From Macrostomum lignano (taxonomy: Eukaryota): a DNA stretch of 64,000 nucleotides. Below the pieces are notes generated by a model. That model ran no database searches. It was not told the DNA's origin and was given only the letters and a program-made list of their open reading frames with translations. A program made the position numbers and the translations under genes. Location: positions 1 to 64,000 of the forward strand of contig NIVC01000232.1 in NCBI GenBank assembly GCA_002269645.1, in the 5' to 3' direction. Shown here one piece after another: positions 15,854 to 64,000 of this stretch (positions within the stretch are counted from its first letter, which is position 1; the number at the start of each line of letters is the position of its first letter).

Positions 15854-17065
15854 TTAGTCAGTGATTTTCTCCACAAGAAGCTTCACCACTTCTAAATGAT
15901 GGAAAAATTCAGCAGATTTCGCAGCTTCCTTGCAGCACTGATCTCTCACATTTTGGTCAGCGACTGTTTCCACAAGAAACTTTACCACTTCTAAATGACC
16001 ACTCGATGCCGCAGACTTCGCAGCTTCCTTGCAGCACTGATCTCTCACATTTTGGTCAGCGACTGTCTCTACAAGAAACTTTACCACTTCGAAATGGCCT
16101 TTCTGTGCAAAATAATTCGCAGCTTCCTTGTAGCACTGATCTCTCACATTTTGGTCAGCGACTGTCTCCGAAAGATACTTCACAACTTCTAAATGACCAA
16201 ACTCTGCAGCAGTTTTCGCAGCTTCCTTGTAGCACTGATCTCTCACATTTTGGTCAGCGACTGTCTTTACAAGAAACTTTACCACTTCTAAATGACCACT
16301 CGATGCCGCAGACTTCGCACCTTCCTTGCAGCACTGATCTCTCACATTTTGGTCAGCGACTGTTTCCACAAGAAACTTTACCACTTCTAAATGACCACTC
16401 GATGCCGCAGACTTCGCAGCTTCCTTGCAGCACTGATCTCTCACATTTTGGTCAGCGACTGTTTCCACAAGAAACTTTACCACTTCTAAATGACCACTCG
16501 ATGCCGCAGACTTCGCAGCTTCCTTGCAGCACTGATCTCTCACATTTTGGTCAGCGACTGTCTTTACAAGAAACTTTAACATTTCTAATAGAGCATCACT
16601 TGCAGCATATCCAGCTTCCTTTGAGCCCTGATGTCTCACACTTTGACCAGTGACTATCTCCAAGAGAAACTTCACCACTTTTAAATGACGATCTGTAGGA
16701 GTAGATTCCGCAGCTTCATTACAGCACTGATATTTCACTCTTTGATCCCAAATTTTTAAGATCAACATGTTTTTTATAGAGTCTTTCTTATTTTGCTTTT
16801 TTACCCCATCTAGTAGAGCTGCGACCACATCCCATTGACAAGCTTCTGCAGCATATTCTGTTGCCTGTAAGCAGCACCGATCCCGGGCATCTTGTCCGTC
16901 CACTTTGTTTACTACGAAATTAATGAGTTTTGTGCGACCTTGGATCGCTGGAAATTTTATAGCCGTAAAACAGTGCTCATTTTTTAAACGGCTGTCTTCA
17001 ATGCGTTCGAGTTGCTGCGTGAATAACTCAATCAATCTCGTATCGTCATCTTCATCGCTGCTCAT
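15854..17065 (-). CDS. D1: ankyrin-like repeat-only protein (~403 aa, ~9 repeats of 33 aa)
   Basis: ATG at 17065 (MSSDEDDD); 99-nt repeat KEAAKSAASSGHLEVVKFLVETVADQNVRDQCC. The stop TAA replaces an expected CAA, clipping ~18 codons. Confidence 0.8.
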   Translation of the reverse strand: MSSDEDDDTRLIELFTQQLERIEDSRLKNEHCFTAIKFPAIQGRTKLINFVVNKVDGQDARDRCCLQATEYAAEACQWDVVAALLDGVKKQNKKDSIKNMLILKIWDQRVKYQCCNEAAESTPTDRHLKVVKFLLEIVTGQSVRHQGSKEAGYAASDALLEMLKFLVKTVADQNVRDQCCKEAAKSAASSGHLEVVKFLVETVADQNVRDQCCKEAAKSAASSGHLEVVKFLVETVADQNVRDQCCKEGAKSAASSGHLEVVKFLVKTVADQNVRDQCYKEAAKTAAEFGHLEVVKYLSETVADQNVRDQCYKEAANYFAQKGHFEVVKFLVETVADQNVRDQCCKEAAKSAASSGHLEVVKFLVETVADQNVRDQCCKEAAKSAEFFHHLEVVKLLVEKITD

Positions 17066-17630
17066 CTTTATGATTTGATTTTCCAAAGTATTACTCGTAT
17101 AATACTTGCTTACGTCAATGATTGCTTACGTAGTTGCAAAGGAAGTTGCATATTAAAAACCAAGTCTATTTTTCCAAGTATGCGGCGATTCAAATGTATT
17201 TTAATGTCGATAAACTCGCAATGTTCCTGAAGGTTAAAGGCCAGTGGACAAATATTCAGAATAGAATGGTATATATGATAATATTATTCTTTTTCAATGC
17301 TGTAAATATTGCTGTTGTAGCCTACTGTATCTTATATCTAAAGCTGAGTGTACCAATCGATCGACCGGCCGGGTTTAACAAGGCGCCGCGGCCGCGGAAC
17401 GATTTTTTCCCAGGGGGCAAAGTTTCCGAAACTCAAGACCAGAAAGTGACAAAAAAGAGACAATGACACTCTCGGACAGTGACAAAAAATTGAGCAAAAC
17501 ACCTAAACTTAACTTTTTCTGCTTTCAAAAAAGGGGGCTCCACCCTTAGATATAGGCACAGCAGATATATTAATTTAATATGATTTGGCATCGTTGTTAT
17601 TTATATTTTAAAATCTCACTGACTCATGCA

Positions 17631-18406
17631 TGTGCATAAGGTCGTCTGGGGGTTTAGGATATTAGTTAGCAAATAAACGGTAGAGTGAATTGTGTAAATT
17701 TATGTGTAGAGTGAACAGTAAAGTGGTGGGTAGAGTAATACTTGTAGATTAAGGGTAGCGCTACTAGACAACTCCGTAAACGTCGATTTCGCGAAGGTCC
17801 GTCGGGCTGATGTCGGCCTCTAGCACCGCGGCAAGGTGCTCCCTCGGGGTGTACCACCTCCCCTGGGGTGTACCTCCAGCGGGGTGGGCGTCCAGCGAGT
17901 GTACCTTCAGCGGGTTGGGCCTCCAGCAGGTGTACCTCCAGCGGGGTGGGCGTCCAGCGAGTGTACCTCCAACAGGTGGGCCTCCCTCGGGGTGTACATC
18001 CGGCGGGGGGATTCCCGCCCCTCCCACCAATGTCGTGTGCACGCGTTAGTCAGTATAGTGTTGGGGCAGGCGGTGTAGGAAGGAAACCCCCGGTGTTGAC
18101 GCAGCCCTGTACAGTGAGCAACCAGCCCCCTTGTAGCAGGATGCGGGGGACAGAGAGCAGCCCTGTCGGAGGGGTGTGCTGGGACAGAGATTGCGAGGAG
18201 GCAGTAAGGGATAGAGGAAGCTGCCCGGTATGTCGCAGCGCGCGGCGCAGGACAGAGAGGCAGTGTGTAAGTCACCCCCGCGGAGGGACAGAGAGCAGCC
18301 CTGGCAGGAGGCGCGGGACAGAGAGGCAGTGAATCACACCCCCACGGAGAGACCCGTACAGAGAGCCCCCAGAGAGAGGGACAGACCAGCCGCGAGCAAC
18401 GTGTCA
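17631..18406. repeat. GC-rich LTR-like/TE segment with internal ~30-bp tandem repeats
   Basis: Repeats GTGTACCTCCAGCGGGGTGGGCGTCCAGCGA (17850-18000) and GGACAGAGAG motifs; TG..CA ends but no TSD found. Confidence 0.35.
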
Positions 18407-62199: not shown

Positions 62200-62454
62200 A
62201 CTACTACTACTGCTACTACTTCTACTACAACTACTACTACTGCTGCTGCTGCTACTACTACTACTACTACTACTACTACTACTACTACTACTACTACTAC
62301 TACTACTACTACTACTACTACTACTACTACTACTACTACTACTACTACTACTACTACTACTACTACTACTACTACTACTACTACTACTACTACTACTACT
62401 ACTACTACTACTACTACTACTACTACTACTACTACTACTACTACTACTACTACT
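62200..62454. repeat. (ACT)n microsatellite upstream of gene C
   Basis: Direct reading. Confidence 0.98.
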
Positions 62455-62693
62455 TGCCTTAGTCTCTTAGTTTCGTATTGCCTTAGTACCTGCATTAGTT
62501 TACCTGCCAACAACTGAACAACAACTGAAATATTGCTGAATTTTGATGCATTGCATATTATCTACTTTCTTCATTCAATTTTAGCCAAGCTACTGCGCTC
62601 GTAATCTGCGCTAGACACGAGGAAATTTCAGTATTAACTAAAAAGCTTGCTTTTGACGCCATCCAGCCGCACCAAAATCTTTACTTGTTCAGC

Positions 62694-64000
62694 ATGAGTC
62701 AAAACAGCTTAAAAGATGTTATTAATGGTGGCGATCTAAAAAAGTTAAAAACTTTAGTAGAGCAGACGCATGACTCGAACGCGAAAAACCAGTTATGCCA
62801 GGATGCAGTTTTGCTTGCTGTGCAAAACCAGAAATGGGAAATGGTGGAGTATTTGATAAGTTGTATTGGCGATGAAAACGTCAGAAACCAGAGCTGTATA
62901 ACCGCCGCCAATCACGCAATGAAGTTCAAACAGGTGGATAAACTGGAATCATTCATAAACAGCATCGGAGACAATCAGCTAAAGGACAATTGGTGCGCTG
63001 AGATGGCAGAATCTGCCCAAATATGGCGCTCTTGGGATGTCGTGCAAATTCTCACAAAAGCCATCAGCAACCAAAGCTTGAAGGACCAATGCTGCCGCAG
63101 ATTCGCTATCGCTGCTGCAGACAGCCAGGATTTACAGGTCCGAAATTTTTTTGTTGAACTGAGCTCAGATGAGGAGTTGAAGCAACAGTTTAGCATGGAG
63201 GCAGCTGGAACTGCAACAAGCAATCAAGAGAAACAAGTTGCAGAAAAAGCATTGTTAGAAACACTGGAGCTGCTGTCGAAAGAGGCCGCTGAACCAGAAG
63301 TGAGAAAGCAGTGCAGTGATGTCTTGGCACAGCACGAATCAGATCAACGGCTCTCAGTTACAGTCGCAGCAAGGCATATCGGTGCCAAAGGCTACGCCCA
63401 ACTTGTCAAAGCATTGCTCAATAAATTAGAAAATGAAAGTGAGAGACGTGAATTTTGCATGGTTGCTGCTGAATATGCTGCTAGAAGTGGACACTTTGAA
63501 CGAGTAGAGTCCGTGTTGCATGGCTGCAAAAGCACAAGACTGAAGGATGAATGCTCAATAAAAGTAGCTGAAGTTGCATCCAGTTGCGGTCACTTTAAAG
63601 TGGCAAAATATGCCATTGAAGCCATCAAAGACCAGAAACTAAGAAATAAGTGCTGTCTCAAGGCTGCTGAGGCATCCGCAAAGAATCGTCAGCTTGAGAT
63701 CACAAAGTTTCTGGTAAACTCTGTTGCAGACAACTTGAAGGACCAGTGCTGCAACAGGGCCACTCCGCCTGCAGCAAAGAACGGTCATCTTGAGGTGGTG
63801 ACCTATCTGGTTCAAAAAATGGTCGACAAAACTCTTAAAGATCAGTGCTGCAAGAAAGCTGCAAAATGCGCTTCGGATTCGCAAAAATGGGATGTCGTGA
63901 AGTTTCTAGCTGCGTCTATCAGCAACCAGGGCCAAAAGGACGAGTGCTACGCGTCTGCTGCAGAATCTGCAGCTTGGAGTGGTAGGTTTGAAGAGACGGA
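62694..64000 (+). CDS. Gene C: 5' part of a close paralog of A (ANK exon), open to the window end
   Basis: MSQNSLKDVINGGDLKKLKTLVEQTHD.. aligns colinearly with A from 28635; not in the ORF track because no stop falls inside the window. cGLR exons are predicted beyond 64000 but not seen. Confidence 0.85.
   Translation, partial: MSQNSLKDVINGGDLKKLKTLVEQTHDSNAKNQLCQDAVLLAVQNQKWEMVEYLISCIGDENVRNQSCITAANHAMKFKQVDKLESFINSIGDNQLKDNWCAEMAESAQIWRSWDVVQILTKAISNQSLKDQCCRRFAIAAADSQDLQVRNFFVELSSDEELKQQFSMEAAGTATSNQEKQVAEKALLETLELLSKEAAEPEVRKQCSDVLAQHESDQRLSVTVAARHIGAKGYAQLVKALLNKLENESERREFCMVAAEYAARSGHFERVESVLHGCKSTRLKDECSIKVAEVASSCGHFKVAKYAIEAIKDQKLRNKCCLKAAEASAKNRQLEITKFLVNSVADNLKDQCCNRATPPAAKNGHLEVVTYLVQKMVDKTLKDQCCKKAAKCASDSQKWDVVKFLAASISNQGQKDECYASAAESAAWSGRFEET

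Follow-up and report, generated by a model that had tools for sequence, protein, structure and literature searches.

When a gene that encodes only ankyrin (ANK) repeats stands head to head with a gene for an ANK-fused cGAS-like receptor (cGLR), and the two are found duplicated together, have they been kept together as a functional pair or merely copied together as neighbors? This question is raised by a 64-kb stretch of the genome of the flatworm Macrostomum lignano (contig NIVC01000232.1; hereafter, the window), which is eukaryotic in character, with retroelement open reading frames (ORFs), kilobase-scale microsatellites, and repeat-rich ORFs. We labeled its genes D1, A, B, D2, and C; D1 and D2 are ANK-only, and A, B, and C belong to the ANK-cGLR family. 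Counterparts of D and B, here D′ and B′, lie at a different genomic place, locus L001 (the BOX15_Mlig015951g2 locus, contig NIVC01000284.1). We conclude that the window is probably a lineage-specific birth-and-death cluster of ANK-fused cGAS-like genes, in which D was copied with its neighbor through descent. The genes, in order, are as follows:

15854 to 17065, minus strand: D1, an intact single-exon ANK-only ORF of 403 amino acids
28635 to 31249, plus strand: A exon 1, with degenerate DQCC/ANK repeats first and canonical ANK repeats after them
31770 to 32128, plus strand: A exon 2, putative nucleotidyltransferase (NTase) core with LTGS-x20-DIDW
32453 to 33933, plus strand: A exon 3, third catalytic motif MDL, Mab-21_C helical lobe, and C-terminal extension
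42078 to 47029, minus strand: B, an ANK-cGLR pseudogene with its putative C-terminal transmembrane anchor intact, tail to tail with A
57584 to 60681, minus strand: D2, a single-exon ANK-only pseudogene of about 1,030 codons
62694 to 64000, plus strand: C exon 1, partial, 435 codons open to the window end

Two divergent gene pairs are collinear duplicates

Self-BLASTN of the window returned six collinear blocks on the same strand, all far beyond chance. Two lie in the D 3′ flank (14106 to 14247 with 56412 to 56567, 78% identity; 15297 to 15403 with 57356 to 57461, 74%), one covers D and its proximal 5′ flank (15834 to 17272 with 59399 to 60873, 77%, 1,171 bits), two fall in the distal spacer (27605 to 27724 with 61225 to 61342, 72%; 27841 to 28273 with 61462 to 61886, 78%), and one spans the A/C promoter and exon 1 (28280 to 29793 with 62325 to 63852, 87.6%, 1,886 bits). 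This confirmed that D1(−)/A(+) and D2(−)/C(+) are collinear duplicates, non-coding flanks included, with 74 to 88% identity. The locus has the marks of segmental duplication: collinear non-coding flanks, differing transposable element content, pseudogenes, and gene fragments.

Both pairs diverge over a shared spacer. Measured between start codons (D1, 17065; A, 28635; D2, 60681; C, 62694), it is 11.57 kb for D1-A and 2.01 kb for D2-C. A preliminary description of the window had put these distances at about 11.6 and 2.0 kb and had proposed that each pair was copied together with its non-coding flanks; the start codons and the six blocks, which include the 3′ flanks and the spacer, agree with it on both counts. 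The 10.3 kb from 17272 to 27605 in copy 1 corresponds to just 352 bp in copy 2, and the spacers differ in length because a young long terminal repeat (LTR) retrotransposon and other insertions lie in copy 1; the 2.0-kb D2-C spacer is close to the ancestral state. The flanks and spacers comprise the following:

14106 to 15403: D1 3′ flank, with patchy homology (BLASTN) to the D2 3′ flank (56412 to 57461) and to the D′ 3′ flank (L001 5765 to 6515)
17066 to 28634: D1-A spacer, of which 17066 to 17272 (D1 proximal 5′ flank) and 27605 to 28634 (A upstream) are homologous to copy 2
17272 to 27605: inserted material within the D1-A spacer (self-BLASTN)
20607 to 25250, minus strand: Gypsy-type LTR retrotransposon with gag, protease, reverse transcriptase, and integrase domains, LTRs, and a target-site duplication
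60682 to 62693: D2-C spacer, 2.0 kb, homologous to 17066 to 17272 plus 27605 to 28634 and to L001 1 to 570

The Gypsy-type element has fragmented ORFs with Pfam matches to rve, Integrase_H2C2, RVT_1, and zf-CCHC. Its 175-bp LTRs (TG..CA) are identical at 174 of 175 positions and a 5-bp target-site duplication (GTTCT) flanks it, which dates its insertion to long after the block duplication. The preliminary description had attributed the swollen spacer to Gypsy, long interspersed element (LINE), and short interspersed element (SINE) insertions. The Gypsy component stands; a SINE-like component is plausible, as the short dispersed repeat at 27252 to 27490 recurs at other loci; the LINE component is not borne out, no LINE reverse transcriptase ORF having been found in the D1-A spacer.

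D as a paralogue of the cGLR repeat domain

D1 consists of an N-terminal unique region and about eight repeats of a DQCC-type unit of 33 amino acids, or 99 bp (DQSERDQCCKEAAKSAASSGHLEVVKFLVETVA); the DQCC motif is also present in the repeats of A, B, and C. Pfam Ank_2 matched the D proteins with E values of 3e-55 (D1) and 7e-51. The AlphaFold2 model of D1 (predicted local distance difference test [pLDDT] 86) is an all-helical solenoid whose best Foldseek matches are DARPins and ankyrin/ankyrin-1, each unit being modeled as an 18-residue and a 10-residue helix joined by 2- to 3-residue loops. Neither the TPLH motif nor the beta-hairpin was found in the unit consensus or in the model. From its 33-residue profile and predicted stack of helix pairs, the D repeat is an ankyrin repeat of an atypical variety.

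No Mab-21 sequence was detected in D by tblastn, nor any Mab-21 remnant downstream of D1 or D2. Residues 19 to 168 of D align collinearly with residues 22 to 196 of A (E = 3e-13), and the D repeats share 65 to 77% nucleotide identity with those at the N termini of A, C, and further members of the family. D is therefore a paralogue of the DQCC/ANK array with which the cGLR itself begins, minus the enzyme, which bears out the earlier observation that D uses the same unusual repeat but lacks the enzyme. A database search with full-length D1 was swamped by generic ankyrin proteins, and the two M. lignano matches to D1 (P0044 and P0154) turned out to represent ANK-Mab21 genes, as N-terminal fragments, rather than D-type proteins.

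The repeats of D1 and D2 form long coding arrays, as delimited by Tandem Repeats Finder:

15832 to 16689, minus strand: D1 99-bp coding tandem array, 8.7 units, 85% matches
57612 to 60301, minus strand: D2 99-bp tandem array, 27.2 units, 86% matches

That of D′ has about 24 units. The units within one gene share diagnostic residues (DQNVR in D1, DQSER in D2 and D′), indicating concerted evolution and turnover of the arrays since the duplication. Variation among units is concentrated at positions 14-15 and 18-20. D1 ends about 20 codons before the stop shared by D2 and D′, through a CAA>TAA change. D2 carries three lesions: a TGA at 60316 to 60318, a 1-nt frameshift in an A-run near 59120, and a TGG>TAG change at 58283 to 58285. 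Antisense ORFs run through both arrays (16006 to 16653, plus strand, 215 amino acids; 57988 to 58737, plus strand, 249 amino acids); these are a by-product of the 99-bp periodicity and do not point to genes.

The ANK-cGLR genes

A has three exons with GT/AG boundaries that keep the frame. Its motif LTGS-x20-DIDW-x56-MDL fits the published cGLR active-site definition, h[QT]GS x8-20 [DE]h[DE]h x50-90 h[DE]h (Li et al. 2023, PMC9980059). Among paralogues, the core TGSYAEGWANSLVQVNGRTAADSDIDW hardly varies, and the GS, DID, and D137 columns are invariant or nearly so in 20 of them. All homologues of the Mab-21 part were M. lignano proteins. Pfam gave a single match to the enzyme part of A, Mab-21_C at 28 bits (cutoff, 24.1), and none to an NTase core; a sequence search of the PDB with the Mab-21 part returned no matches, so fold comparison was needed. 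In Foldseek, the top 50 matches to the AlphaFold2 model of A (pLDDT 79; predicted TM score 0.83) were all cGAS, MB21D2, or MAB21L1 (E ~1e-6, probability 1.0), with moderate target-normalized TM scores of 0.44 to 0.57 and alignments spanning about 380 cGAS columns across both lobes. A thus carries the full cGLR active-site motif and, by predicted structural homology to known cGLR/CD-NTase enzymes, would be a cGAS-like (Mab-21 fold) nucleotidyltransferase.

The C exon 1 sequence shares 87.6% nucleotide identity with A. Exon 1 of A holds 3.2 near-identical (96%) 99-bp coding units at 29679 to 29991, and C holds about one (63630 to 63852), which shows that the sensor array of the cGLR, too, differs in repeat number.

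In A, a 1-nt deletion near 33787 shifts the frame and removes a putative membrane anchor, which is still encoded in another frame:

33789 to 34088, plus strand: A tail as read in the other frame, with 99 open codons before the homologous stop and a putative transmembrane tail anchor like that of B (ending FYLPAV)

As this frame is still open past the deletion, the deletion is either very recent or an assembly error. The strongly hydrophobic C-terminal segment (...LIVVVLIVIVIFVSYLPAV) common to B (42078 to 42200), B′ (L001 13181 to 13316), and the out-of-frame A tail looks like a tail anchor; it is absent from the other ~30 annotated paralogues, and a membrane-anchored cGLR subfamily would be unusual. 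B is disrupted by a 7-bp insertion near 45320, which causes a frameshift, and by a TGG>TAG change at 44209 to 44211 in the NTase exon, which falls between the GS and DID motifs and so interrupts the active-site motif. Both sites are intact in B′. The preliminary description had mentioned neither these lesions nor those of D1, D2, and A.

A and B share homology in their 3′ flanks, in inverted orientation (35053 to 35608 with 41319 to 40882 and 33669 to 33767), and so the two genes themselves derive from an older inverted duplication. Within this flank lies one further fragment, found by self-BLASTN and tblastn:

35324 to 35608, plus strand: stray fragment of a Mab-21 C-terminal region (pseudogene fragment)

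A third copy of D at a second locus

D′ is an intact single-exon ORF of 950 codons. The 570 bp upstream of it match the spacer common to D/A and D/C, and homology to D1 and D2 continues in the 3′ flank; its N terminus is roughly equidistant from the two (66% amino acid identity to D1, 63% to D2). The L001 sequence stops about 600 bp short of the expected facing ATG, so that any divergent partner of D′ would lie outside it. Downstream of D′ on the same strand is B′, which is 5′ truncated and frameshifted; B and this locus share 97.9% nucleotide identity over 5.2 kb. B′ sits within a 9.17-kb insertion (L001 9248 to 18416) flanked by a 6-bp ACAAAA duplication relative to window 7796 to 7801, which could reflect gene capture mediated by a transposable element or a repair-mediated insertion.

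The GenBank annotation of this assembly is derived from RNA sequencing and numbers genes within transcriptional units (PMC5730564). B′ is annotated as the "g2" of its unit (Mlig015951g2), and D′ is the sole other same-strand gene called upstream in L001, from which it appears that D′ is probably transcribed, possibly in one unit with B′. The numbering thus ties D′ to same-strand B′ and not to a divergent partner. For the annotated 719-amino-acid D′ product, canonical 693-nt introns gave four candidates, none of them among the database proteins searched. We also considered L001 as a homeologue of window copy 1, on the basis of 93 to 99.7% matches to window 4462 to 9556, and dropped this idea because parts of that interval recur at unrelated loci and are dispersed repeats.

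Pairing is absent from the other sampled loci

Is the arrangement general? We searched 11 further M. lignano loci (L002 to L012; 10 with an ANK N terminus, L012 with Mab-21 only) with the D N terminus, the D repeat, and the Mab-21 domain as queries, covering 10 kb of upstream flank (8.4 kb at L007 and 5.9 kb at L012). A divergent D-type gene upstream of the cGLR-type gene was found at none of the 11 within these ~6 to 10 kb. At every locus, the DQCC/ANK signal lay on the same strand directly upstream of the Mab-21 exons and is therefore the gene's own N terminus. A profile search with the D N terminus found no annotated D-type protein, making a database count of D-like genes impossible. Pairing was thus seen only in three copies related by descent; it did not recur elsewhere, and one of the D partners, D2, is not intact.

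One locus offers a different arrangement. L003 has three ANK-Mab21 genes in 24 kb (72 to 2889, minus strand; 10001 to 13764, plus strand; 21743 to 23340, plus strand), so that two full-length ANK-Mab21 genes stand head to head about 7 kb apart, a plausible precursor state of the D/cGLR arrangement.

The signal of selection on D is weak

Over the D N-terminal unique region (95 to 170 codons, pairwise), the ratio of nonsynonymous to synonymous substitution rates (dN/dS) was 0.36 to 0.52 with dS of 0.33 to 0.40; for exon 1 of A versus C, it was 0.35 with dS of 0.20. The D arrays gave 0.75 to 2.3 within one gene and 0.8 to 1.2 between genes. The D N terminus is moderately constrained and the arrays little, so the signal of selection on D is weak; the pattern would suit a functional gene that is weakly constrained and has a variable binding face just as well as a gene in slow decay. 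A comparison of "hypervariable" with "scaffold" codons was set aside as evidence of positive selection because the classes had been picked after seeing the variation, which is circular.

How the cluster may have formed and what D may do

Under our preferred and most economical account of birth, death, and descent, D most likely originated either from a head-to-head pair of full-length genes, one of which was truncated at its 3′ end, or from exon 1 copied in part and inverted. The ANK-only derivative would have arisen once, about 2 kb from an A/C-type gene, and a later segmental duplication copied D and the cGLR as a single block that took in the intergenic and 3′ flanking sequence; judging by the order D1 A B and D2 C, this unit may have been a larger D-A-B triplet. 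Subsequently, the copies diverged independently: the 99-bp arrays would have grown and shrunk by unequal crossing-over (to ~9, 27, and 24 units), transposable elements split copy 1, D2 and B became pseudogenes, and A lost, or is losing, its membrane anchor. We infer that the linkage reflects descent rather than selection for co-regulation.

Several observations weigh against this account. The long ORFs of D1 and D′, the dN/dS of the D N terminus, the annotation of D′, and the variable repeat positions suggest that D is functional now or was so recently, and those variable positions would fit a binding surface. That the pair was kept in three copies is also compatible with selection. Certain lesions, above all the frameshift at the A-run of D2 and the single missing nucleotide in A, might stem from misassembly. 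Finally, the survey covered 11 loci rather than the genome, and A/C-type genes have no protein-database annotation, so that the sample omits the closest relatives of A.

The strongest competitor is the proposal of the preliminary description that D and the divergent ANK-cGLR function together under common regulation, D being the sensor, decoy, or inhibitor, in a pair that is kept by selection and duplicated as a module. The copying as a unit, the paralogy of D, and the existence of a third intact copy uphold part of that proposal. The head-to-head arrangement over an ancestral spacer of about 2 kb that is homologous in all three copies, the presence in D of the cGLR's own repeat type, the intact ORFs of D1 and D′ with N-terminal dN/dS below 1, and the hypervariable loop positions of the repeat would all suit such a pair. 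The pairing itself fares worse: it is confined to one sub-lineage in which all three pairs descend from one ancestral arrangement, and it is missing at the 11 other loci. D2 is dead while the visible part of C is intact, and about 10 kb of insertions now separate D1 from A. Moreover, the spacer is conserved at 72 to 78%, not above neutral-looking flanks, and the arrays have a dN/dS near 1. The idea of a paired module is neither required nor supported beyond shared descent, and we regard it as improbable.

A regulatory or decoy role for D is possible independently of how the linkage arose. If D1 and D′ proteins are made, their variable AAxxxH loop face would most plausibly bind the same partner or ligand as the cGLR ANK array, and D would then act in trans as a competitor or adaptor. 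The fullest version of this idea makes D a trans-acting free copy of the hypervariable sensor array of a membrane-anchored ANK-cGLR, part of a two- or three-gene immune module, competing for or delivering the activating ligand or partner and kept divergent from the enzyme gene or in one transcriptional unit with it. We hold this joint reading to be slightly less probable again; if true, it would be the first "paired" cGLR system.

Preferring descent, we also weighed whether D partners the cGLR downstream on its own strand (D2 with B, D′ with B′) in one transcriptional unit, the divergent neighbor being incidental. M. lignano makes polycistronic, trans-spliced precursors. The order of D followed by a B-type cGLR is found both in the window and at L001, B′ is numbered second in its unit with D′ as the only same-strand gene called upstream, and L005 and L002 agree with numbering by transcriptional unit. 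B′, however, is a recent 5′-truncated copy (98% identical to B) inserted into unrelated sequence, and its adjacency to D′ is thus not homologous to that of D2 and B in the window; D2 and B, both pseudogenes, lie 10.5 kb from each other; and D1 has no downstream cGLR within 15.8 kb. In addition, the identity of "g1" could not be confirmed, and StringTie units can merge neighboring genes. Such a partnership is very unlikely.

Last, an assembly artifact in which haplotypes or homeologues of this neopolyploid were placed in tandem can be rejected: although the Mlig_3_7 assembly is known to contain redundancy, 180 Mb of it falling in blocks of 95% identity or more (PMC5730564), the two copies are only 74 to 88% identical, far below what is expected of haplotypes or homeologues, they differ in repeat number and transposable element content, and a third, equally diverged copy exists.

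Microsatellites, dispersed repeats, and other ORFs

Two microsatellites stand upstream of the cGLR genes, at the edge of the best-conserved duplicated block:

28280 to 28433: (TAC)n microsatellite, 51 copies, about 200 bp upstream of the A ATG
62199 to 62454: (TAC)n microsatellite, 85 copies, about 240 bp upstream of the C ATG

Two long tetranucleotide microsatellites of one motif on one strand, (ATAG)482 (100%) and (TAGA)390 (97%), occupy 50398 to 52327 and 9800 to 11356, each 4 to 5 kb 3′ of a D gene. They give spurious "SIYL" ORFs of 650 to 680 amino acids and may be part of the duplicated unit or of a transposable element. A (CTAT)n tract at 38723 to 38861 is associated with a dispersed repeat. 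A 34-bp minisatellite occurs at 3711 to 4144 (12.8 copies) and 38396 to 38566 (5 copies), 91 to 97% identical between sites; together with adjacent dispersed repeats, it is common to both ends of the A-B region and to other loci.

Between B and D2 are two ORFs, at 49453 to 50385 (minus strand, 310 amino acids) and 53642 to 54760 (plus strand, 372 amino acids), neither with a Pfam match. By eye, the former contains a GIY-YIG-like "YIGETG" stretch that recalls Penelope-like elements.

Comparison with known systems

Metazoan cGLRs with appended ankyrin repeats are a known, minor architecture in a study that already treated related BOX15 proteins of M. lignano as cGLRs and cloned several that share the GS...DxD core for its biochemical screen (Li et al. 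2023, PMC9980059). Those ANK-cGLRs resemble A in joining an ANK array to a cGAS-like NTase with the active-site motif and, at the level of AlphaFold2 models, in similarity to cGAS. That study describes no ANK-only neighbor gene (Li et al. 2023, PMC9980059). The ANK part of the window genes further differs from theirs in being an atypical DQCC repeat that lacks TPLH and the beta-hairpin and is encoded by variable 99-bp arrays, and B, B′, and A as read in its shifted frame add a putative C-terminal transmembrane tail anchor absent from other paralogues. Both this domain architecture and the occurrence of cGLRs in M. lignano have been published before; the locus adds new detail to a known kind, namely the ANK-only neighbor, the coding minisatellite, and the tail anchor.

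M. lignano is exceptional for its large expansion of ANK-cGLRs. At this locus, the family is seen diversifying through segmental duplication and coding-minisatellite expansion of a putative sensor domain, and also through domain loss, which yields ANK-only genes, and gain or loss of a membrane anchor. Should it turn out that the enzymes are controlled by ANK-only genes, cGLR signaling would gain a new regulatory logic, in an animal made tractable by RNA interference and transgenesis.

Two precedents bear on such a role. In plant head-to-head NLR pairs such as RGA4/RGA5 and RRS1/RPS4, both members are full-length receptors whose genetic interdependence has been demonstrated. The D/cGLR pairs are like these in being related, immune-type genes that diverge from a short spacer and are inherited or duplicated as a unit; they are unlike them in that D is a repeat domain only, of the window's two pairs one is dead, pairing does not recur in the family, and the system is known from sequence alone. 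In the NF-kappaB pathway, IkappaB is an ANK-only protein that mimics in trans the ANK domain fused in the paralogues p105 and p100. By analogy, it could serve as a conceptual precedent for an ANK-only inhibitor or regulator acting in trans, with no sequence relationship beyond the ankyrin repeats themselves.

The closest likeness is to NLR, KIR, and MHC-type clusters, which share with the window segmental duplication that includes flanks, pseudogenes, gene fragments, transposable elements, and repeat variation of the kind produced by unequal crossing-over. Here, by contrast, the gene family is ANK-cGLR and the phylum that of a free-living flatworm; on present evidence, the locus is a case of ordinary immune-type gene-cluster turnover.

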